Part shown: positions 3,501 through 54,679 of the stretch, piece by piece | How the letters are laid out: every line of letters begins with the position of its first letter | Numbering within the stretch: the stretch's first letter is position 1 | Assembly: GCF_963921235.1 (NCBI RefSeq) | Contig: NC_086100.1 | Coordinates: 60,574,001-60,638,000 of the forward strand | Source: Mobula hypostoma | Lineage: Eukaryota | DNA: 64,000 nucleotides | Reading direction: 5' to 3' | Translations under genes and position numbers: made by a program | The notes under the pieces: model-generated | Seen by the model: the letters and a program-made list of their open reading frames with translations, nothing else | Database searches by the model: none | Told to the model about the DNA's origin: nothing

Positions 3501-6500
3501 AAAGGAGGAAGGCAAAAAAAAAAAGGAAATTATAGGCCAGTTAGTCTAACATCAGTGATTGGAAAAGTTTTGGAGTCCATTATTAATGATGAGGTTTCAG
3601 GGTACCTGGAGAGTAATGATAAAATAAGACAAAGTCAACACGGCTTCTGTAAAGGGAAATCTTGCCTGACAAATCGATTAGAGTTCTTCGAGGAAGTAAC
3701 AAGCAGGGTTGAAGAAGGGAGAGGCAGTGGATAAGGTGCCAGCCACACTGCTTAACAAGATAAAATCCTATGGCATAACAGGAAAGATACTGGCATGGAA
3801 TGAGAAACGGCTGACAGGCAGAAGGCAGCGAGCAGGAACAAAGAGGGCCTTTTCTGGTTGGCTGCCAGTCACTAGTGGTGTTCCTCAGGGGTCACATTTT
3901 TTGTCAGTGATTTAGATAATGGAACTGAAGGCTATGTGGCAAAGTATGCAGATAATACGAAGATAGGTGGAGGGGTAGGTAGTGCTGAGGAAGCAATGCG
4001 ATTGCAGCAGGACTTACACAAATTGGGAAAATGGCAAAAAAGTGGAAGATGGAATACAGTGTTGGGAAATGTATGACAACGCATTTTGGTAAAAAGAACA
4101 ATAATGCAGACTATTATCTAAGTGGAAAGAAAATTCAAACATCAGAGGTACAGAGGGACTTGGGAGTTCTTGTGCAAGACTCCCAGAAGGTTAGTTTACA
4201 GGTTGAGTCTGTGCTAAAGAAGGCAAATGCAATGTTAGTACTCATATCAAGGGGAATAAAATATAAAAACAAAGAGGTAATGTTGAGGCTTTATAAGACA
4301 TTAGTCAGGCCACACTTGGAGTATTGTCAATAATGTTGGGCCGCACATCTCAGAAAGGATTTATTGTCATTGGAGAGAGTTCAGAGGAAGTTCATGAGGA
4401 TGATTCTGGGAATGCAGGAGTTAGCATATCAGGATTGTTTGGCAGCTTTGGGCCTGTACTCACTGGAATTTAGAAGTATGCCGGGGGGGGGCGCGGTTGG
4501 TTTCATTGAAACCTACCAAATGTTGAAAGGACTAGATAGGGTGGATGTGGATGTTTCCTAATGTGGGAGTATCCAGGACTAGAGGGCACAGCCTCAAAAT
4601 TGAGGGGCAACTTTTTAAAACAGAGGTAAGGAGGAAATTTTTTAGCCAGCGAGTAGTGAATCTGTGGAATGCTCTGCCACAGACTGCAGCGGAGGCCAAG
4701 TCCATGGGTATATTTAAGGCAGAACTTGATAGTTTCCTGTTTGGTCAGGGCATCAAAGGATATGGCGAGCAGGCAGGTGTATGGGGTCGAGTGGGATCTG
4801 GGAACAGCCATGATGGAATGGCAGAGCAGAATCAATGGGCTGAATGGCATAATTATGCATCTATGTCTTATGGTCTTAATCACTTCACAATCTCATTCCC
4901 AAATGGCTAAGTTATTTTTTTCATGGGCTTTTGCCCTTGATCTCGCAAGCGCAATTTCACTGAAAGCTTGATTTCAGCCAATAACATCTGCATATCACCT
5001 CCATTGTGTTTTCCAAATCCAGTAATCAAATTAGGAGTTTGGTTAACACACAAAGTAAATTCATTTTTGAATTCTAATTCCTTAGACATAAAAGCTATCA
5101 TTATTATGGGTTTTTTAGTATTTGTGCACAGTTCAATAGTTGTTACTTTATACTAATTTGTAGACTCTCACCATTAATTGTCCAATTTGTTTTCCTTCAA
5201 CGTTCCCCAACTTTAGACTACCCAGCCAAAATTTTGCTTGTTATCTGTCCACATCCTTTTGTAATTTTCTATTCCATCCATAAATGTCTTGCCACTTAAG
5301 TTAGTGGCAGTTACAGTCTTGCATCCATATCTATTCATCTAACCAAATCAACACATGCTGAAAATCTGACACCTGCATTCCAAAGTCAAAGTCGGGTTTA
5401 CTGACATATACACAAAAACATGTATGCACAAATACAGCAAAAAACTTATTTGTAGCAAAACTTACTTGCAGGGTCCCATTCAGATCCCTGCAGAACAACA
5501 CTTGATATGGATAGTTAAAGAACATTATTTCTTCCTCTTAACTTCTATCTCTTCAGTTCTAAACCATGTCAAAATATTAGCTCCAATTGTGGGCTTACTT
5601 TTACTAAAAAATTCAAGTCTAAATAGATAGATTTTTGGTCCACAGTGAAATTCCAGCATCAACCAGTTTAGAACAATTAGTCAGTCAGACCTGACCTCCT
5701 TAGCAAAACCATACAGACACAAATCAGTTTCTACTAATCCAAGTACTGTTAATCTGTTCTTAGTCATAAACTTTTATAACTTCAGATTGGCATTGGTATT
5801 CAGCTGACTCAATCCTCATTCTCTTCTGAGATAATGTAAGTCATATTTGCAGTTTTGTGACGATATACCATCTTAAATATTACCACCCAAAATAACATTA
5901 AACATCATATATATTCAATTCCTTCCTAGATGTGTTTTTAGGTTATCTGTATAGTTGTAATTTTCTTCCTCTTATAAAATTAGATACATAAACAAATTCA
6001 AAGGGTTCAAATTCTTACAAAAGAAAGCAACCTTTTACACTGGATTATGTTAATGTATTTATAACAGAGAAAACAAACTATTCTGCCTAACACTTCCATG
6101 TTTGCAATTGTGTCATGAGTTTTCCAACCCTCCTTTCTCTATGCCAATATTATATTGTTCAAAATGGTCATTATGGGGTGATAATTCTTGTGTAACAACA
6201 CTGCTTCATTTCAGAAAAAAAAGAGACTACTATGCTGCCTTTAGTCATCTAATAGCACATGATCACCTGCCAATTCTAGCACTGTTTTTCCACCCTAATG
6301 ACAACCTTTAGCTCCATATTATCATATTATTGCCAAATCATTACTATTTAATTAATTATTATGAAGACCAAAGACAATTCCTTTACAATACAAGTTGCTC
6401 CCTACATGACTCCCTTCTCCATTCCATTCCTCCCCACTGATCTCCCTCCTGGTACTTATCCTTGCAAGTGGAACAAATGCTACATCTGTCCCTACACCTC

Positions 6501-9500
6501 CTCCCTCACTAACATTCAGGGTCCCAAACAGTCCTTCCAGGTGAGGTGACACTTAACCTGAGAGTCTGTTGGGGTCATCTATTGTACCCAGTGTTCCCAG
6601 TGTGGCCTCCTGTATATCGGTGAGACCCGATGTAGATTGGGAGACCACTTCGCCAAGCACTTATGCTCTATTCACCAGAAAAAGCGGGATTGCCCGGTGG
6701 CCACCCATTTCAATTCTATTTCCCATTCCCATCCCGACATATCAGTCCATGCTTCTTCTACTGCCACGATGAGGCCACACTCAGGTTGGAGAAGCAACAC
6801 CCAATATTCCTTCCTGGTAGTCTCCAACCTGATGGCACGAACATCGACTTCTCAAACTTCCTGTAATTACCCCCTTTCACCATTTCCCTCTCACCTTATC
6901 TCCTTACCTGTCCATCTCCTCTCTCTGATGCTCCTCCTCCTTCCCAATCTTCCATGGTCTTCTACTCTTCCTATCAGATTTCCCCATTCTCCAGCCTTTT
7001 ACCTCTTTCACCAATCAACTTCCCAGCTCTTTACTTTACCCTTCTCCCTCTCTCATCTACCACTTTGCACTACTTCCTCCCCTCTTCCCCATCTTCTTGT
7101 TCTGACTTCTCATCTTTTTTCCCAGTCCTGATGAAGGGTCTCAGTCCAAAATATCGACTGTTTACTCTTTTCCATAAATGCTGCCTGGCCTGCTGAGTTC
7201 TTCTAGCAATTTGTGAGCATTGCTTACATTTCCTTCAAACTCTGTTCAACAATCCTCATCCCTTATATTTACCTCTTGGCCCTTTGTATCTAATACATGA
7301 TGCCATCTAACCCAGAATTTCAAATGTTCATTACCAGAATTGTTCATTTCCATGGTATTGCCTATTTTCTTCCTATTACATTGCCCGCCTACTGAAACCT
7401 CTATTCAGTGTTTTTGCAATCTCCAATTTGGTTGCTTGTAAGTTGTTCAAGGATCTCAGACTCAAAGCTGATAACCTGGAACCTGAGCTTCGAACACTGC
7501 AACACTTCACGGAGGGGGAAGAGCTACCTGGACACATTGTTTCCGGAGGCAGTCACACCCATTAGATTAACTAATGTCAGGGACAAGAGGGTGCAGCTGA
7601 AAGTGAGGCAGGTAGTGGGATTCAAGAGGTAGTGCTGCAGAAGCCTCAACCATTAAGCTTATCAAAAAGGTTTGAGACTTGTACGCTGTGTGGTCAACAG
7701 TGGAGGCTGTAGGAAAGATGAGCAACTATGCCACTGTGGTTCAGGGAGCATTTCAAGAAGGGGGAGAGAAGAGAAATGTATTGTAACTGGGGATGGTATA
7801 GTCAGGGGACTAGGCAATTATTATCTGTCATAACCTCGAAGGCTGTGTTTGTTACCTGTGTGGTCCCTGGGTTCGGAACAGCACATTTGGCCTGCAGACG
7901 GATTTTGAGTCGGGGGCGGGGGGGGATCTAGTTACTGGAGGTAGAATAAGGAAAATTCTTGATGGGAGTTATATACAGGACTCCAAATAGCTAGGGTGTG
8001 GTGTACAAATTATTACAGGTGATAGAAAAGGCATGAATGAAAGACAAGGTTAAGGTCGTCATGGGGATCTTCAATATGCAGGCAGATCGGGAAAATCAGG
8101 TAGACACTAGATCCCAAGAGCCAGAATTAGTAGAATGACTGCAAGATGGATTGTGGTCAAACACACAAGGGAAAAGGCAATTCTAGACTTGGTGCTGTGC
8201 AATGAACCAGAATTGACTAGGAAGCCAAGGAAAAAGAATCCTTAAGAAGGCAGTGATCATAATGTATCAGAATTCACTGTGCAGCTTGAGAGGGAGAAGC
8301 TAAAATTGGATACAATAGTATTACAGTTGAGTGAAGGTAACGACTCAGGCGTAAGAGAGGAGCTGGCCAAAGTTGATTGGAAGTGGACACTAGCAGGGAT
8401 GATGGTACAGCAGCAATTGAAGGAGGTTCTGTGAGTAATTCAGAAGGTTCAGGATCATTTCATCCCAAAGAAGCAACAACATTATATAGGGAAGATGAGG
8501 TAACAGTGGCTGATAAGGAAGATCAAAGAGAGCATAAAAGCAAAAAAGAACACACATAATATTGAAAAAAAAATTAGCAGAATGCCAGAAGATTATGAAA
8601 CTTAAAAATCAACAGAAGGCAATTAAAAAAAGCAATAAAGTAAAAGAAAGGCAAAAGTGGACATTAGACTGCTAAGAAATGACCCTGGGAAAGTAGCAAA
8701 AGGAACAAAGAAATGACAGATGAACTACATAAATATTTTGCATCCACCTTCACTATGGAAGACACCAGCAACATGCCAGAATTGAGAGGATGAGGGGCAG
8801 AAGTATGTGTAGTCACTATTACAAAGGAGGTGGTGCTTGGGAAGCTGAGAGGTCTGAAAGCAGGTAAGTCACCAGGATTCTGAAAGAGGTAGCTGAAGCG
8901 ATTGTGGAGGCATTAGCAGTGATCTTTCAAGAAACACGAGAGCCAGAAATAGTTCCAGAACATCACAACTGTCACTCCACTCTTTAAAAAGGGAGGGAGG
9001 GAAAATACAGAAAATTATAAACCGGTTAGCAAGATTTTAAGGATCTCGGAGGTACATGACAAAATGGGCCAAACTCAGGATGATTTCCTTAAGGGAAGAT
9101 CCTGCCTGACAAACCTGTTAAGACGCAAGAAGCAGGACAGATGAAGGAGAATCAGTCAACATTGTTTACTTGAATTTTCAAAAGGCCTTTGACAAAACGC
9201 CACCCATGAGGATGCGAAACAAGATGGGGACCCATGGTATGACAGGAAAGGCATTAGCATGGATAGAAGATTGGCTGATTAGAAGAAGGCAAAGAGTGGG
9301 AATAAAGGGGGCCTTCGTTAATTGGCTGCTAGTGACAAGCAGCATTCCACAGAGGTGACGTTGGGTACACTGCTTTTCACATGACATGTTAATTATCTCA
9401 GTGACAGAATAGATGGAATTACAGCCAGGATTGCGCTTGATACAAAGGTAGGTGGAGGGAAAGAGAAAGAGTTGAGGAAGCAGGAGAACTCAGATGGGTT

Positions 9501-12500
9501 GGGAGAATGAGCAAGAAAGTAGCAGATGGAAGACAGTGTAGAAAAGTCTATGGTCATGCACTTTGGTAGAAGGAATAAAGATATAGACTAGTTTCTAAAT
9601 GGAGAAAGAGTCAACAGGACTTGTGAGTCATAATGCAGCTTTTCCTAATGGTTAACTAGGAGGTTAAGAATGAAGTCAGGAAGGTAAATGTAATATTAGC
9701 AGTCATTTTGAGAGGATTAGAATATAAAAGGAAGAATGTAATGGTAAGGCTTTATATGATATTGATCACATTTGGGGTACTGTGAGCAGCAATGAGACCC
9801 AAATTGAAGAAAGGATACTCTAGCATTGGAGAGGATCAGAGGAAGTTTACATGAATGATCCTGGGAAAGAAAAGGTTAATGTATGAGGAGCATTTGACGG
9901 TTCTGTCCTTGCACCAGCTAGAGTTCAGAAGACTCAGAATCAGGTTTAATATCACTGGTATACTTCATGAAATTTGTTAACTTGGTAGCAGCAGTACAAT
10001 GCAATACATGATAAATATCAAAAAAAACAAATGATTTATAATAAGCATATATATTTGTATATCAAATAATTAAAATTAAAAATAGAGCAAAAGCAGATTT
10101 TTTTTAAAGTGAGGTAGCATTCATGGGTTCAATGTCCACTTAGAAATCGGATGGCAGAGGGGAAGAAGCTGTTCCTGAATCACTGAGTGTGTGCCTTCAG
10201 GCTTATGTACCTCCTTCCTGACAGTAACAATAAGAAGAGGGCATGTCCTGTGTGATGGGGGTCCTTAATAATGAACGCTGCCTTTCTGAGGCACCGCTCC
10301 TTGAAGATATCTTGGATACTACTGAACCTGATTCTTTAGCCAGACTCTGTAGAATCATAACCACAAACGGCTGTGGATATCATGTTGTTGAGTATATTTA
10401 AAGTGCAGGTTGATATGTTCTTGATTAGTAAGGGTGTCAGTAAGTACAGGGAAAAGGCAGGAAAATCGGATGGAGAGGAAATGATAAATCAGCCGTGACT
10501 GAATGGTGAAGCACTCAATGGGCTCAGTGGCCGAACTCTGCTCTTATGTCTGATGGTCTACCTTGATCATCTTGTTAACCTCCTGTGTTTCTTTGCATCT
10601 TACAAAATTCAACCAACAAACTCAAATACTTCCAATTCAACTCAATGCCCGCTAATATAACAACTCCTCAGACCTTTCTACCCACAGCAGCTTTTTGTTT
10701 GGTGTCACAGCTTCAAGTATCTATAACCATGAGATTTGTGAGGAAATAATAGACTATACAATACTTTTCATCATCTGTTCCCATCTCGTCACGATCTTTA
10801 TCCAGTTCTTTAAGTTTCCAGTTCCGATGATGTTGCCGTCTGGCTCGATCATAGCTCTTCTTAATTAAAATCTAAAGGAAGAGTACTTATCAATAAATAA
10901 ATATAAATAATTCACAAGTTACTGTATCTTCAAATTAATGTAGATAAAATCGGTCCATGCTAAAGTGCAACATTTTCCAATTTTTTTAAAGAATGATGTT
11001 TTATAAGTTTAAGTTTATGCTTTTAACAATCATCATTGTTACAATTAGACCACTTACAGCTCAAAGTGTTTTACAAGGTGGTGGAAAACCATGGATGAGT
11101 GGGAAGGATAAAGGAAAGTGAGAAATAATGCACTGAAAAGCAGTTTTAGAGCTTGTTGTAAACAAAATAAGACAAAGAAATCCACAAGTGTAAACTGTAC
11201 AATTTAGCATGGACTTGTTCAAAAAAATGAACATGGTACAGTGGACTAAGAATGCATTATACTGTATGAGCATGTATAAGCATGATAAATCATTCCTGTC
11301 TCTATCCGATATATTCCTTTCATTATTTTGTAAGTTTCTATAAGATTCCCGCTCATTCTTCCGAATTCCAATGAGTATAGTCCCAGACGACCCACTCTTT
11401 CTTCTCACATGCCAACCCCTTCATCTCCGGAATCAACCTGGCGAACCTCTTCTGCACCAACTCCAAAACCAGTACATCTTCTCTCAAAGGAGAGCAGAAC
11501 TGCACACAGCACTGCAGGTGTGGCCTCAACAGTACACTGTACGATTGTAGCAAAACCTTCCTGCTCTTAAACTTAATCCCTCTATCAATGAAGAGCAACA
11601 TTGTATTTGCCTTCTTTGTACCTGTTGTACTGCAAACCAACCTTTTACAATTCACACCAACAGTTCCAAATTCCTCTGCGTAACAGCATGCTGCAACCTT
11701 ACACCATTTAAATAACAATCTGTTCTACTTTTACATCCAAAGTGGATGACCTCGTATTTACCAACATTGTATACCATTTGCCAGCCGCTTGGTCACTCAT
11801 TTAGCCTACCATACCTCTCTACAGAATCTTTGTATCCTCTGCAGAGTTTGCTTTCCCACTCAATTTCACGTCGTCAGCAAATTTAGATAAACTACACACA
11901 GACCCTTCTTCCAAATCATTGATGTGTACAGTGATAAGCTGCAGGGTCAGCACCCACCCCTGAAGCACCCCTCACTGCTGATTGCCAGTCAGATAAACAT
12001 CCATTTATCCCAACTCTCTACTGTCTATTGTTAACCAATCCTGTATCTATGCTAATAAATCACCTCTAAATCCAAGCATCACTTTACAGATCACAGGCAT
12101 TAAGCTAACTGGCCTCTTGCCTTGGATAACTAAGGCAATAAAAAGGTGGCAACGAACTAAAAGATCACGTATACAAAATCGTAAAGAGTAGTTAGAAACT
12201 GGGAGATTGGGACTTGGAAGACAAGAAACAGGAATTAATATTGGGTTATACAGAAACAGCTGAGGCTTTGAACAACTATTGTGTTGTCTTTTTGTAGAGG
12301 ACGACGTCTAACATGCCAAAGAGAAATGTTATGTATGTGATAGGAGGTGAGGAGGTTGCTCTACCTTAAGTTCATTCCTCCAGCATTTTGTGGATGGATT
12401 TTGTTCATTTATAGTCAACCAAAAGAGCACGTCTGCATACATTGGATGAGTTCCTCTGTCAAGAACTATTAGGAACTAATACAGTTTTATAGAAACATGC

Positions 12501-30500: not shown

Positions 30501-33500
30501 TCTTATAGAGTGGAGTGAAATTTGCAATTTTCCAATCCTCCAGAACAATTCCAGAATCTAGCTATTCTTGAAAGATCACTACTAATGCCTCCACAATCTC
30601 TTTCAGCCGCCTCTTTCAGAAACCTGGGGTGTTTACCTGGTCCAGTTAACTTATCTACCTTCAGACCTTTCTTCTTCCTAAGTGCCGTCTCCTTAGTAGT
30701 AACAACTATACTCATTTCTATCTCCTGACACACTCGACTTTCTGGCATGCTCCTGGCATCTTCCATCGTGAAGACTGATGCAAAATACGTAATTATTCAG
30801 TTTGCCTGCTGTTTTTTTTAAATCTCCATTTCTACTTCTCGAGCATCCAGCTGTCCAATGACTACTTTTGCCTCTGTTTTACTCTTTATACATCTAAAAA
30901 ACTTTTGGTAACCTCTTTTATATTATTGGCTGGCTCACCTTCATAGTTCATCTTTTTTATCCATATTGCTTTTTGAGTCGTCTATGGCTGGTTTTAAAAA
31001 GTTTCCCCATTCTCTAATTTCCCACTGATTCTTACTATTTTATATGCCGTTTCTTCTGCTTTTATGCTGTCTCTGACTTCCTGTATCAGCCACAGTTGCC
31101 TCATTCTCCCTTTAAAACACTTCTTCTTCATTGGAATGAATGAATCCTGCAACCTCCGAATTACTCCCAGAAACTTCAGCCACTGCTGCTCTACCATCAT
31201 CCCTACTAGTGTCCCCTTCCAATCAACTTTGGTTGGCTCCTCTCTCATACCTCTGTTATTTCTCTTACACCAATGTAATACCAATACATCTGACCTTAGC
31301 TTCTCCCTCTCAAACTGCAGAGTGAGTGACTACTGCCTCCTAAGGGTTCCTGTACCTTAAACTCCATAATCAAATCTGGTTCATTACACACTTAATTCGG
31401 AATTGTCTTCTCCCTGTTGGGCTCGACTACAAACTGCTATAAAAAGTCATCTGCTAGGCATTTTACAAATTCCTTCTCTTGAGATCCAACACCAGCCCGA
31501 TTTTCCAATCATGGTGTCGAGGTCTTCACCAATGACGATGGACGAACACAGATTTTTCAATCTACCTGCAAACTGAAATCCCCCAGGACCATTGTAACAT
31601 TGCCCTTTTTACATGCCTTTTCTATCTCTCATTGTAATTTGTATCTCATATCCTGGCTACTATTCAGATGCTTGCTTATAACTCCCATCAGGCACTTTTT
31701 ACCTTTGCAGTTTCTTAACTCTACTGATAAGGCATCTATATTTTCTTTTTTAACCAACAAAGCCACGCCACACCCTCTGCTCACCTGTCTACCCTTTCGA
31801 TATGAATATCCTTGGATGTTAAGCTCCCAGCTGTATCTTCTTTCACCCACAACTCTGTGATGTCTGCAAGGTCATACTTGTCAATTTCTAACTGCGTTAC
31901 AATATAATGCACCTTATTTCATCCATGTTATTTCATTAGCTTTGTTGCAGTAAATAATTCTATGCATTTAACTGCTATTTGTTCCACACACATATCTACA
32001 CCTTTCAAAATGATGAAATGCTGTTACTCACATCAAAATGTTAAGGTACACTATTTTTGTACATTAAAAACAATTTATTCACCTTCTGGCGAACTTGCAC
32101 TACTGCTTTCCAGTAGTCTTTAGCTTCAACACGGTGGCAATCATCACACATCTGTGGTAGAATGACAAAATCTACCACAAATACTTGCTGCAATATTGTT
32201 CCACTCATTACCTGCACACAAAACTTGCTATTAGAAAATGTAAAATAGATTGAATATTATATACTACAACTTAATAGCATAAATAATTTCAGTTGTACAT
32301 AAGGTCAGAAAATGTTCCTCATGTCAAAGGTTGAAGACATCCAGGTAACAAAGCCAGCCAGCCAAGTCAGTAACCTTACCAGCTGTGGATTGTGCAAAGT
32401 AATTTTTAAAAAATCTGAAGTCATCATAAGGCATGCAAAACTGAGAATGTTATCCACAAGTAGCTCATCTAATAAACCAGCGCTTCCCAGGCAACTTTCT
32501 TATTCTGGCTAAGTGCAACTGCACTTTGACATAGTTATAACTGGCCCAGTATAAATTAAGAATACAGGTTTCCCCTGCCATCTGAAGGTAGAGTGTTCCT
32601 ATGAAACGGTTCGTAAGCCGGAATGTCGTAAAGCGAAGAAGCAATTACTATTTATTTATATGGGAAAAATTTGTGAGCATTCGCAGACCCAAAAATAACC
32701 TACCAAATCATGCCAAATAACACATAAAACCTAAAATAACAGTAACATATAGTAAAAGCAGGAATGATATGATTAATACACAGCCTATATAAAGTAGAAA
32801 TACTTTTCCACAATCATTGCCTGCACTGTTCTCTGTAGCGAAAATCTCAGCAAGCACTCTCGGCAGAAACACTCTCTCCAGTAACCTTTAAGCTATGAAG
32901 CTGCCAAATCATACCAAATAACACATAAAAGTACACAGCCGATATAAAGTAGAAATAATGTATGTACAGTGTGTTAGGCTGAGTTGTCGGAGGTTGGGGT
33001 GGGCAGCGAACCGATACCGATCCGCGAAGCATGCAGCGGTCCAGCGGTAACCGGGAGGCACACAGCACATCGTTAAGAAAAAAGCCGAAATAAACAAGCT
33101 AATTAATTAGGTGCCGCCCGGCACGTAATTGTCGGCCCAGATCAGAGGCAATTGCCGATTGCGTCGCCTCTGATCTGGGCCAACATTTACATGCCAGGCG
33201 GCACCTAATTAATTAGCTTGTTTATTACGGCTTTTTTTCTTAAAGATGTGCTGGTTGCCTCCCGGCTACCGCTGCATTCTCCGCGAATCGGTATCTGTCC
33301 GCGGCCCGGGGGTTGGGGTGGTGGGACACTGGGGTGTCATCTCATCATCGTCTGTTTCCATCAGGGCAGGCAGGTCATCTTCTTCTATGACTGCCCGCCT
33401 CGATGTCGAAGGTCGAGGTTCGTCGTCTGCTGTGGCTGATGTGGAAGGCTTAAAAAACGACAGTATGCTTGACTGCTGAGCCTCGCGCATTTTTCTATTA

Positions 33501-36500: not shown

Positions 36501-39500
36501 TCCGACATCGTCAAGCTATATTTGCACATTCAGCGTGGTGAAACTATATAGTTGATTTTAAAGGACTGATTTACTGTAGTCCAAAAGTTAAAACCAAATC
36601 TTAGCAAATATTTTTTACCAATACACTTCCAGCATAATTGTTTTGCAAATTATTAAAGTACATAACAGAGAGAGAATGGTATTTTCATCAATGACATTTT
36701 CACTGTTATGACTTCTAACTTGTTTCTGTAGACTAAATATAGAAAAGGTGCCGTTATAATATGAACAGTTTGGAAAAATCCACAATCCCCTCAAAGCCCA
36801 ATATCTTTGACAGAAATCCTAAATAAAAATGATATCAGAATCAGAATCAGGTGCATGTGATGTGAAATTTGTTAACTTAGCAGCAGCAGTTCAATGCAAT
36901 ACATAATCTAGCAGAGAGAAAAAATAATAATAAAACAAAACATAATAAATAAACAAGTAAATCAATTACGTACATTGAATAGATCATTTAAAAAAATGTG
37001 CAAAAACAGAAATATTGTATACTAAAAAAGTGACATAGTGTCCAAAGCTTCAAAGTCTATTTAGGAATCGGATGGCAGAGGGGAAGAAGCTGTTCCTGAA
37101 TCACTGAGTATGTGCCCTCAGGCTTATGTATCTCTTACCTGATGGTAACATGCCCTGGGTGCTGGAGGTCTTTAATAATGGATGCTGCCTTTCTGAGATG
37201 TCCCTAAAGATGTCCTGGTTACTTTGTAGGCTACTGACCAAGATGGAGCTGACTAGATTTACAATCTTCTGCAGCTTCTTTCGGTCCTGTGCAGTAGCCC
37301 CTCCATACCAGACAGTGATGCAGCCTGTCAGAATGCTCTCCACAGTACAACTATAGAAGTTTTTGACTGTATTTGTTGACATGCCAAATCTCTTCAAACT
37401 CCTAATAAAGTATAGCCTCTGCCTTGTCTTCTTTATGACTACATCAATATGTTGGGACCAGGTTAGATCCTCAGAGATCTTGACACCCAGGAACTTGAAG
37501 CTGCTCACTCTCTCCACTTCTGATCCCTCTGTGAGGATTGGTATGTGTTCCTTCGTCTTACCCTTCCTGAAGTCCACAGTCAGCTCTTTCAACTTACTGC
37601 CGTTGAGTGCCAGGTTGTTGCTGCAACACCACTCCGCTAGTTGGCATATCTCACTCCTGTACGCCCTCTCGTCTCCATCGGAGATTCTACCAACAATGGT
37701 TGTATCATCAGCAAATTTATAGATGGTGTTTGAGCTATGCATAGCCACACAGTCATGTGTATACAGAAAGTAGAGCAGTGGGCTAAGCACACATCCCTGA
37801 GATGCACCAGTGTTGATCATCAGCAAAGAGGACATGTTATCACTAATCCGCACAGACTGTGGTCTTCCGGTTAGGAAGTCGAGGATCCAATTACAGAGGG
37901 AGGTACAGAGGCCCAGGTTCTGCAACTTCTCAATTAAGATTGTGGGAATGATGGTATTAAATGCTGAGCTATAGTTGATGAACAGCATCCTGATGCAGGT
38001 GTTTGTGTTACCTAGGTGGCCTAAAGCCGTGTGAAGAGCCATGGAGATTGCATCTGCCATTGACCTATTGTGATGTTATTAAGTTATCTTGACATCAACT
38101 TAATAATTCTTTAGAAGTAAACAAATTCACTGAAAATGCCGTGTATTATATGCACCCAAAAATTCAATTTTTTTACCCACAAATGTAGTTAGAACATTTA
38201 CCCACATACAAAAAAGTGACAATTCAGTAATATTTCATCTGTCAATAATACCTCTGAGTAGCTTGAAATCAAGTAATTATTTGTACTTGACTATAAGGAA
38301 GATGGTGCAGATGTACATTGGTGACTCACTGCAGACTGTAGGAATTTGTACCTGTTTTCCTTTTAAAAATATTCCTTTTGAACTACTTTCATTGCAATCT
38401 GCAACATGTAAATTTCCTCTTTAACAACAGGATACAAAGTTACATCAATGATCTTCAGATCTCAAGTTCAACAGTTCAATGCAGAGCAGTTAATCGCGAC
38501 ACCTTTCAGGGTCAATATCATGGCTGAAAATGCGGCAGGAAACGCAGAATGAGGCCTCCTCTTCCAAGCATCTTGTTGGCGAATGTATAGTCATTTGAAA
38601 ATAAAATTGACGACCTCAGGGCAAAGCTGCTGTATCAGAGGCAGATAAAGCAGATCTCAATTGTTTGTTGCATTGAGACTTGGTCACGCCAGACCCAGCT
38701 ATCCGATCACGTTTTACTATTTTCAGAATGGATCAAAGCTCAAATTCTGGTAAGGAAAAAGGTAGCAGCATATGCTTTTTAGTCAATTCTCGCTGGTGCA
38801 TGGATGTTGAGGTTATGTCAACTTCCTGTCCCCCTGACTTGGAAAAATTAACGATTAAATGTAGGCTATTCTACTTGCCTCGAGAGCTCTCATCGGTGAT
38901 CCTAACCACAGTTTGTATACCCATAAGCAAGCGCTCGCAAAACTGCACGATGCTGTCTGTAAACAAGAAATGGCCTTTCCTGCCGCATTTCAAGTTATAG
39001 GTGGTGACCTTAACTCTGCATGTTTGAAGAAGACCCTGCCCAATTATCACCAGCACGTAACCTGTTGCACCAGAGGTCCCAACACTCTAGACCACTGCTA
39101 CACTACGATAAGGAATGCCTATCGTTCCTTCCCAAGTCCGCATTTTGGCAAGTCAGATCATTTGGCTGCACTCCTGCCACCTGCATAGAGACACAGCCTA
39201 AAGAGCAAGGCTCCAGAGATCAAGACAACCGAGTGGTGGCCACGAGAGGCTGAGGAACAATTATAGAATTGCCTTAAGTCAGTGGACTAGATCGTGCTCA
39301 GGAATTCATCTGAGGACCTGAATGACTACACCAGGGTCATTACAGACTTTATTAAAACAGCCGAGGATGAGTGTGTCCCCACAAGATCATTCCGGGTTTT
39401 CCCCAATCAGAAGCTCTAGATGAAGAATGAAATGCAGAACCTGCTGAGAACCAGATCAGAAGCGTTCAAGTCTGGAGATCAAGCATGCTACAATACATGC

Positions 39501-52915: not shown

Positions 52916-53194
52916 AATTGCCCAGGACATTGCTTTTAAAGTAGCTTGTGGTCAAGCCCTCTAGGGAAAAGGCAATTCTGGATTGGGTGTTCTTTGATGA
53001 ACCAGATTTGATTAGGGAGCTTAAGGTAAATGAAAATGTAGGAGGCAGTGATCATAATATATTAAAATTCACCCTGCAATTTGAGAAGGAGAAGCTAAGA
53101 TTGGGTGTATTGATATGAGTAAAGAGAGCTACAGATGGATAAGAGAGGAGCTAGCCAAAGCTGATTGGAAGGGGAGACTAGTAAGGTTGCCAGT

Positions 53195-53755
53195 GTGTTC
53201 GTCCATCGTCGTCATCGATGAGGACCTGGACACCATTATGATGGTGTTGAGACTAGCACATGATTTGGATTTAAGTGAGGGAGAGTTGCACAGCGTCAGC
53301 CTCACTCTCTCTTCCCAATTCCCATCTGGATCCAGTGGCAAGACAGAGTCGAGACGGCTGGAGATGGGACTAGGCGCAGTGGATGACCAGGACGCCTTCT
53401 GTGTCTTGTTGTGCTCTACATGTTCCACGACGCTTGCAGAGACCGCCTTCTTGACCGTTGGACCTTCCATTGGTCTCGTCCGCTCAATCCGCCGGAGTCT
53501 GTCTTCACATGCTGGGATAGACAACTCCCTATCTCACCGAGGGTTTGAGACCTGTCGGCTACCCTCATCTGGTTTAGCCGGCTTGTCGAAGCCGTTGCCC
53601 GGGGTGTGGCCACTGTCGCATGCAAACAGCTATGGAGAGCCATAGGTAAGAGCTGAGTGCCAGGTGGGGACCAAAGGTGGACAAGTTGCCTGAAAAGGAT
53701 ATGACATGTTCCCCCACCAGAGGTGCTACCCCTCCCTGGCACCCCATACACCCCA
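53195..53755 (-). mobile_element. Full-length non-autonomous RTE-type retroelement (~560 bp) with ~15-bp TSD
   Basis: AGTAAGGTTGCCAGT (53180-53194) / AGTAAAGGTTGCCAGT (53756-53771); RTE-like 3' end GTCCTCATCGATGACGACGATGGACGAACAC; no evident pol III boxes. Confidence 0.85.
53562..53754 (-). ncRNA. Candidate HDV-like self-cleaving ribozyme at the element 5' end
   Basis: P1 GGGGTGT (53754-53748) / ACACCCC (53607-53601); P3 GGC/GCC; GGGCAA; P4 CGGCTT-CGAC-AAGCCG; J4/2 GCTAA; imperfect P2 CTCTTACCT / AGATGAGGG. Confidence 0.65.
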
Positions 53756-54679
53756 AGTAAAGGTTGCCAGTAAAGGAGCAATGGCTGCAATATCTGGGAG
53801 TAATTCGGAGGATGCAGCATCAGTTCATTCCAAAGAAAAAGAGACATTCCAAAGAGAGGGTGAGACAGCAGTGACTGGGAAGGGAAATCAACGACAGCAT
53901 AAAAGCAAAAGAGAGGACATACAATATAGCAAGAAGCTAGAGGATTTGGAAGCTTTAAAAAACAACAGCAGAATACAATTGTTTTTTAAAAGACGAAAGA
54001 TGAAACATGAAGTCAGTCAGTAATATTAAAGCAGATATCAAATGTTTTTCAGATATATAAGGAGTGAAAAAGAGGCAAGTGGGCATTGGACTGCTGGTAA
54101 ATGACACTGGAGAGGTAGTCGGGGGGACAAAGAAATGCAAATGAACTGAATAAATATTTTGTGTTAGTCGTCACTGTGGATGACACCGGAAGTATGCAGA
54201 AATTCAAGTGTGTCGGGGAGCAGATGTGAGTGCAAAGACTATTACTACGGAGAAGATGCTTGAAAAATTGAAAGGTCTGATGGTAGAGTAGATATGTCAC
54301 CTGGATGAGATGAACTGTACCCCAGGGTTCTGAAAGAGGTAGTGGAAGATTACTTGAGGCATTACTATTGATCTTTTAAAAATCACTAGCTTCTGGAATG
54401 GTTCCAGAGGTCTGGAAAATTGCAAATTTTACTCCACTCTATAAAAAGGGAGGAAGGAAAATGACAGCTAATTATAGGTCAGATACCTTGACATCAGTGG
54501 TTGGCAAGATGTGAGAGTCCATTATTAAAGATAAAGTTTCAGGGAACTTGTCGGCACAAGATAAAGGAAGTCACCATCAGCAAGGTTTCATTAAAGGGAA
54601 ATCTTGTCTGACAAATCTGTTGGAATTTTTTGAAGAACCAGCAAACAAGATAGACAAAGGAGAATCAGTGGATGTTATT

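Follow-up and report, generated by a model that had tools for sequence, protein, structure and literature searches.

A 64,000-nt stretch of the Mobula hypostoma genome (contig NC_086100.1, positions 60,574,001 to 60,638,000; called the window here) carries on its minus strand a retroelement of 559-560 nt, at window 53195/6-53754, that begins with an RNA fold of the hepatitis delta virus (HDV) type. Its sequence is best explained, and in our view probably correctly, as a fossil from a family of long interspersed nuclear elements (LINEs) that is internally deleted, non-autonomous and high in copy number, with an HDV-like ribozyme in its first ~195 nt. Neither a reverse transcriptase (RT) nor an apurinic endonuclease (APE) is encoded inside the element.

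The insertion lies between perfect 12-bp copies of a target-site duplication (TSD), AAGGTTGCCAGT, which lengthens to 15/16 nt if one indel is allowed; a single T (53755) separates the duplication from G53754. This G, within 1 nt of the element start, opens a complete HDV-type nested double pseudoknot. The parts of the fold and of the element are listed below, where element coordinates p run along the minus strand (p = 53755 - x for window position x), P, J and L denote paired, joining and loop segments, and the related loci (L001 to L007) and back-translated copies are those introduced further on.

53195..53754, minus strand: whole non-autonomous retroelement, delimited by the TSD, by depth collapse and random loose ends in reads of four organisms, and by comparison of p1-504 with the LINE heads of L001 and L002.
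53760..53771, no strand assigned: upstream TSD copy AAGGTTGCCAGT (letters of the plus strand), which extends to 53756 with one indel.
53183..53194, no strand assigned: downstream TSD copy AAGGTTGCCAGT, a 12-mer identical to the upstream copy.
53748..53754, minus strand: P1 5' strand GGGGTGT (p1-7), pairing with p148-154 and invariant in five lineages that all start here.
53653..53747, minus strand: J1/2 peripheral domain (p8-102), a branched hairpin of the 'P1.2' type in minimum free energy (MFE) folding, with seven of the nine double-sided pair changes, and the part in which subfamilies differ most.
53644..53652, minus strand: P2 5' strand CTCTTACCT (p103-111; consensus CTCTCACCT).
53639..53641, minus strand: P3 5' strand GGC (p114-116), invariant in six sequences, with G-C/C-G in 29-31 of 34 back-translated copies.
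53631..53638, minus strand: L3 proper (p117-124), TCTCCATA in this copy and UCCCCGUA in the consensus, whose letters come from family contigs.
53612..53630, minus strand: inserted hairpin (p125-143), consensus GCTGT-TTGCATGCG-ACAGC, present in all six lineages and in the RNAalifold prediction.
53608..53610, minus strand: P3 3' strand GCC (p145-147).
53601..53607, minus strand: P1 3' strand ACACCCC (p148-154), in which C154 to U gives a G1-U pair in L006 and L007, as in HDV.
53594..53600, minus strand: GGGCAAC (p155-161), comprising the GG of P1.1 and J1/4, with the same letters as genomic HDV and identical in four of six sequences.
53579..53594, minus strand: P4 hairpin CGGCTT(CGAC)AAGCCG (p161-176).
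53571..53578, minus strand: J4/2 GCTAAACC (p177-184), with the candidate catalytic C178 (x = 53577).
53562..53570, minus strand: P2 3' strand AGATGAGGG (p185-193; consensus AGGTGAGGG).
53251..53561, minus strand: body (p194-504), whose counterpart is the 5' untranslated region (UTR) of the LINE past the ribozyme, by blastn to L001 6231-6734 and L002 5949-6404.
53195..53250, minus strand: 3' tail (p505-560), with the stem-loop CACCAT..ATGGTG and the end ..GACGATGGACGAACA(C), homologous to the LINE 3' end by local alignment to L001 10286-10312.

The ends of this copy are those of a large family. Logan contigs from DNA runs, covering four organisms with different labels, were aligned to the stretch at 80% likeness, and between 2,600 and 11,400 contigs per run matched the element; at least 12 organism labels carry it. 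As family depth collapses, by a factor of a hundred to a thousand, at 53750-53775 and near 53196, and as the loose ends at 53754-53756 and 53196 are essentially random with an A/T-rich consensus (agreement 0.36-0.42), the family ends where the window copy ends. GGGGTGT is the exact starting point of homology among the window copy, L001, L002, L006 and L003, each of which has unrelated DNA upstream, and the family 5' ends are sharp (±2 nt). Their spread of 1-2 nt is compatible with chance extension into T-rich flanks or with a few non-templated bases, such as have been described for R2 lineages whose cleavage site is the first base of the element (PMC3774820). A first-pass annotation of this DNA had proposed a non-coding retroelement with a TSD-fixed 5' end within 1 nt of G53754. 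The AAGGTTGCCAGT copies together with the family boundary bear out the end, and thousands of contigs in each of the four organisms show the family to be very abundant; heterogeneous 5' ends, which would have spoken against the proposal, were not seen, and five lineages including L001 and L002 start at GGGGTGT.

The element interrupts a copy of a different dispersed repeat, at window 53100-53190 and 53760-53850 (minus strand); an uninterrupted paralogue of that repeat lies at window 31120-31330 (plus strand). Joints labelled 'skips 594' in the read data are further empty paralogues of this interrupted repeat.

Because the window copy differs from the family majority at 24 or more positions, mostly by G/C to A/T transitions, it is an old, decayed insertion. 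Its lesions include G122A in L3, C119U in P1.1 and G187A in P2, where CTCTTACCT and AGATGAGGG form eight of nine pairs, two of them G-U, around one C-A mismatch, and the copy is probably catalytically dead. The family majority letters at the repaired positions, each with 88-99% of depth, rebuild the fold. A T>C change at x = 53568, in more than 99% of family depth, makes p187 a G and restores C109-G187 in P2; C at p107 (U in the copy) turns a G-U pair of P2 into G-C; C at p119 (copy U) provides the second C of P1.1; G at p122 (copy A) is the L3 G; and C at p143 (copy U) closes the extra hairpin with G125. The consensus also has G at p112, unlike the window copy. In consensus form P2, CTCTCACCT/AGGTGAGGG, has nine pairs with one G-U, and the conserved HDV core letters are all present (L3 UCCCCGUA, GG at p155-156 and C178 in J4/2). 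The annotation had suspected a mismatched P2 and an inactive copy, and had asked whether a consensus would restore the helix; the C-A mismatch, joined by G122A and C119U, agrees with the first, and the A to G change at p187 answers the second in the affirmative. A second subfamily, visible in the read loose ends, has UCCAAGUA as its L3 and the same extra hairpin.

Within the head, P1 (GGGGTGT/ACACCCC) consists of seven Watson-Crick pairs and is followed by a long hairpin domain in J1/2 (p11-100, MFE -44.5 kcal/mol). The 28 nt between the P3 strands had been read in the annotation as an expanded L3. The length stands, but L3 itself is a canonical 8 nt (p117-124), followed by a 19-nt hairpin (p125-143) inserted before P3' and by G144. 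C118-C119 of L3 pair with G156-G155 to form P1.1, and G122 is the conserved L3 G, a position that is highly conserved and at which a G-to-A change abolished cleavage in one R2 ribozyme (PMC3774820). The candidate catalytic C had been placed in a J4/2 of GCTAA; C178 is indeed present, in a longer J4/2, GCTAAACC. It is retained in five of six DNA sequences, and the codon-60 residues of the back-translated copies (L, Q, T) permit a C at p178 except for the single T (P0037). The GGGCAAC segment reads TGGTAAC in L003 (one C-to-T, two CpG-type G-to-A/C-to-T) and GGGAAAC in L007 (C-to-A). Nested MFE folding gives P1, the J1/2 domain and P4 for the window copy and P2 for the consensus, while RNAalifold, given just the core, arrives independently at P2, P3, the hairpin and P4. 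An alternative drawing, in which the extra hairpin serves as P3 with a 9-nt L3, was rejected: its 13-nt and 4-nt linkers pair together and no CC is available for P1.1.

The likeness to HDV extends from topology to individual letters. The genomic HDV string CCUCCUCGCUGGCGCCGGCUGGGCAAC runs through P3, L3 (UCCUCGCU), P3' and P1' to GGGCAAC. Aligned by segment, UCCUCGCU GGC GCCGGCU GGGCAAC of genomic HDV parallels UCCCCGUA, the hairpin, GCC ACACCCC GGGCAAC of the element; in full, the consensus from P3 on is GGC-UCCCCGUA-(GCUGU UUGCAUGCG ACAGC)-G-GCC-ACACCCC-GGGCAAC. L3 is thus UCCCCGUA in the consensus and UCCUCGCU in HDV, canonical in length, in register (a U, the two C's of P1.1 and the G) and largely in sequence, and GGGCAAC follows P1' in both; a 7-bp P1, a 3-bp P3 and GGC-N-AA around the catalytic C are likewise shared. 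The element differs from HDV in having G1-C in place of G1-U (although L006 and L007 have G1-U), a large J1/2, the hairpin adjoining L3, a short P4 and a longer J4/2.

Relatives outside the window were found with the frame-1 translation of p1-336, which retrieved two and then 46 database 'proteins', and the conserved block of these 46 is the translated ribozyme core. Two of the retrieved contigs, L001 and L002, bear a homologous head directly upstream of a LINE. In L001, an 816-nt 5' region without a long open reading frame (ORF) precedes an intact ORF of 1076 aa (7047-10277) with Exo_endo_phos and RVT_1 domains and a 3' UTR of ~35 nt ending ...GACGGACGAACA(ACA)6; in L002 the APE and RT ORFs are decayed. 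By blastn, p1-504 aligns to L001 6231-6734 (76-78%) and to L002 5949-6404 (73-74%), and the last ~27 nt of the element align to the L001 3' end (10286-10312), followed by (ACA)n. Since p1-504 is collinear with the LINE 5' region and the tail with the LINE 3' end, the element is identified as a 5'-plus-3' deletion derivative that appears to retain the first ~500 nt and the last ~50 nt of the parental LINE. To judge from these alignments it is an internally deleted LINE and not a short interspersed nuclear element (SINE) derived from a small RNA, and its putative ribozyme is inherited from the LINE. The proposal of an RTE-linked 'ribozyme SINE' is therefore upheld in so far as an APE+RT LINE shares both head and tail, but the composite SINE with a ribozyme of its own gives way to the internal-deletion derivative.

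The single ~1000-aa APE+RT ORF, the absence of a long ORF1, the very short 3' UTR and the tandem-repeat end of L001 match RTE architecture, and the partner LINE may be called RTE-like by architecture alone. At E <= 1e-20, over 1,700 sequences are related to its ORF2, and many of these lie on ~4 kb contigs; the sole named relative is a UniRef entry from the frog Leptobrachium leishanense (67% identity). The C-terminal end carries a conserved C2H2-like motif, CPTCGRxFxxRIGLxSHxRTH. A database gene call for L001 (7047-10430, 1127 aa) reads through stops, and the standard or bacterial code gives 7047-10277.

How much of the HDV likeness would chance supply? Besides this site, a lax HDV descriptor picks out two further loci of the window, and over 40 dinucleotide shuffles its matches come to ~0.7 loci per 128 kb; because it matches shuffled sequence, the fold topology alone is not significant. 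The significance lies in the start of the match coinciding with the nucleotide that the TSD and the family 5' boundary fix independently, at ~1e-5 per position. Every helix of the order given in the first-pass annotation can be drawn on the window copy. In an alignment of six distinct heads (the window copy, L001, L002, L003, L006 and L007), the full pseudoknotted structure yields standard pairs in 89% of cells, compared with 40-50% in controls whose 3' partners are shifted by 1-3 columns. None of 500 shuffles matched the paired percentage and five matched the covariation score. Double-sided changes are seen in nine pairs (seven in J1/2, one in P2 and one in the hairpin; six sequences only): the P2 pair U111-A185 becomes A-U in L001, and the hairpin pair G125-C143 becomes A-U in L002. 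The hairpin pair 130/138 goes from U-G to U-A, and several pair changes are wobble-compatible, including C154 to U, which produces the HDV-like G1-U.

Conservation follows the same outline. Variable columns make up 34% of the core (p103-195), 57% of J1/2 and 76-84% of the downstream region. As the variable positions of the core fall on codon positions 1, 2 and 3 in 7, 13 and 12 of 31 cases, with no third-position excess there or downstream, conservation acts at the RNA level and not on a coding sequence. A further 34 copies, obtained by back-translating spurious ORFs, were mostly uninformative, since most pairs have a partner at a third codon position. In this set 31 of the 34 retain P3, and the pair 161/176 is C-G in 21, U-A in 4, U-G in 4 and C-A in 5. 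Taken with the HDV letters, these patterns make it likely that the head is an HDV-type fold under selection; that it is active with the hairpin as we have drawn it is a claim we make with less confidence.

R2, RTE and other LINEs carry HDV-like ribozymes at their 5' termini, and these cleave at the first base of the element (PMC3774820, PMC7936874). Because the ribozymes of R2, RTE and L1Tc behave in this way, we infer a comparable life cycle for the present family. Source copies would be transcribed within longer host or read-through transcripts, and the ribozyme would cut just 5' of G1 (G53754) and release an RNA that begins with the first base of the element. The APE+RT protein of the LINE would then recognise the shared 3' stem-loop and tail, and target-primed reverse transcription into a nicked target would generate the duplication of 12-16 bp.

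A more ambitious reading, to which we give slightly less than an even chance, is that the head represents an undescribed structural subclass of HDV-like ribozymes, with a canonical 8-nt L3 followed by a conserved extra hairpin ('P3.1') before P3' and with a large P1.2 domain, and that this subclass, as an active ribozyme, processes the 5' ends of a LINE family and of its massively amplified deletion derivative in more than one lineage of vertebrates (cartilaginous fish, and relatives of the frog LINE). Several observations weigh against the preferred account of the head as an HDV-like ribozyme. Rfam, with its curated models for HDV_ribozyme, CPEB3, drz-Agam and others, gave no family at E <= 10 on the region or on five related loci (L001-L007), and none in the whole window at the gathering threshold, a failure to be expected if the two large insertions defeat covariance models. 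L3 of an HDV-like ribozyme is closed directly by P3, with ~7-8 nt between the P3 strands, and here there are 28; we know of no precedent for a hairpin between L3 and P3', which adjoins the active site. J4/2 has 8 nt compared with 4 in HDV, and P2 of L002 contains an A-G mismatch. P1, P3 and P1.1 are invariant and therefore contribute no covariation; the compensatory changes in the core (111/185 and 125/143) are single events among six sequences, and the U-A doubles at 161/176 are attributable to two independent CpG decays (4 observed, ~2 expected). Contigs labelled 'RNA?' that cover the head continue into the upstream flank with no pile-up of starts, but contigs cannot show RNA 5' ends and so speak neither for cleavage nor against it. 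Finally, L001 has 10 extra nt, CACCCCTGTT (6221-6230), between a TSD-like TCAATCTGT and G1; these possibly arose by snap-back or template switching at the 5' junction, CACCCC being complementary to GGGGTG.

Among other accounts of the head, the one that fares best, though we consider it improbable, is that it is a structured RNA or DNA with another job (as internal promoter, in translation initiation or in binding the LINE protein), that its HDV likeness is coincidental and that the uniform 5' end reflects transcription initiation at G1. The missing Rfam match, the random matches of the lax descriptor and the predicted nature of the cleavage all leave room for it, and the first 77 nt of L1Tc, described as both promoter and ribozyme (PMC3383444), show that 5' heads can have other roles. 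A promoter role, however, would leave a ribozyme possible, and coincidence would have to account at once for six of the eight HDV letters in L3, the HDV-identical GGGCAAC, the J4/2 C, P1.1 CC/GG in register and a P1 at the very first base, as well as for a consensus that repairs precisely helix and L3 positions.

That the block was kept for the peptide it encodes, as the N-terminus of a LINE ORF1 or ORF0, is much harder to sustain. In the window copy frame 1 has no stop for 112 codons from G1, and the frame is open also through the L001 and L002 heads, and the 46 protein-library matches share the translation. Yet that frame was imposed by the query, no in-frame start stands at the element 5' end, the 'proteins' have unrelated starting points, of which several lie in flanking DNA, and the codon positions of the core vary in the proportions given above. 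Least probable of all is a classical Pol III SINE with a small-RNA head (tRNA, 5S, 7SL or snRNA) fused to an RTE tail, which the ~560-nt size, the abundance and the LINE-type tail would suit, but which finds no Rfam small-RNA family in the head and is at odds with the collinearity of the first 504 nt with LINE 5' regions from G1 on.

The preferred reading, an HDV-like ribozyme at the head of a LINE and of its deletion derivative, is of a known kind; what is new is the vertebrate host, the copy number and the hairpin adjoining L3. With the HDV-like ribozymes at LINE ends (Sanchez-Luque et al. 2011) the element shares the nested double-pseudoknot order, P1 at the first nucleotide, L3 U-CC...G, the GG of P1.1, the C of J4/2 and a presumed role in release from read-through transcripts; it differs in its vertebrate host, its 19-nt hairpin between L3 and P3', its 8-nt J4/2 and its lack of Rfam recognition, and it is known from sequence alone. 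Short Internally Deleted Elements (SIDEs) of R2 are deletion derivatives made of the 5' ribozyme and the 3' end (PMC3414825). Both they and NARTc of Trypanosoma cruzi join the 5' ribozyme region of a parent LINE to its 3' end, are mobilised in trans and have 5' junctions that vary by a few nt, as here. SIDEs, however, are rare and rDNA-specific, whereas this family is dispersed in thousands of copies in several species, and unlike both it keeps ~300 nt of 5' UTR past the ribozyme.

Large structured J1/2 domains are also known, are activating and have been described as a 'pinch' architecture (PMC4908430), and J1/2 lengths in R2 reach more than 700 nt (PMC3774820). The head resembles drz-Agam-2-1 (PMC4908430) and the R2 ribozymes with such J1/2 (PMC3774820) in its stable base-paired domain of ~95 nt between P1 and P2, its linkers of 3 nt and 2 nt and its 9-bp P2, but the sequences are unrelated, and the domain here is branched and variable between subfamilies. 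The twister-variant ribozymes at Schistosoma non-LTR 5' ends (PMC8501958), although of another ribozyme class, similarly define the 5' end of RTE-type and SINE-like elements.

Should the subclass reading prove true, no self-cleaving ribozyme family in a vertebrate genome would be more abundant than this one. A family present in several species at thousands of copies per genome would constitute a natural mutational library for the fold. The family would offer a vertebrate test case for co-transcription and self-cleavage as the source of RNA for promoter-less LINEs and their parasites, and the extra hairpin makes a testable prediction on the insertion tolerance of the HDV active site. For annotation, the internally deleted LINEs are the proper class for this abundant 'SINE'.

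Within the window the family is represented by this copy, as neither blastn nor a purpose-built covariance model of the core found another, and tblastn with the partner ORF2 (P0053) was without match. A fragment at window 31403-31550 (plus strand) shares the element tail, ...CAATGACGATGGACGAACAC, with the match at 31508-31549, and is probably either a 5'-truncated relative or a member of another family mobilised by the same LINE. The window does contain a 319-aa ORF with RVT_1 and an ALKBH8_N-type domain (37101-38060, minus strand), which belongs to a different LINE and has no tblastn relation to the partner ORF2.

Scans of other collections gave no copies among JGI metagenome contigs (peptide patterns and a 23-nt DNA pattern), no match in IMG/VR and headless contaminant fragments only in GTDB genomes. 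An identical decayed ribozyme head is found on three short contigs, L003, L004 and L005 (JGI 3300030235, ERZ23500279 and ERZ27276717), which suggests that DNA of the same animal is present in all three metagenome samples. Fragments of ORF2 also occur in bacterial assemblies, namely in a Thioalkalispiraceae metagenome-assembled genome (L008, CAZDEC010000195.1), in Ancylomarina longa (L009, L010 and L012, NZ_RJJX01...) and in Photobacterium chitinilyticum (L011, NZ_RJLM01000247.1), and are likely eukaryotic contamination.

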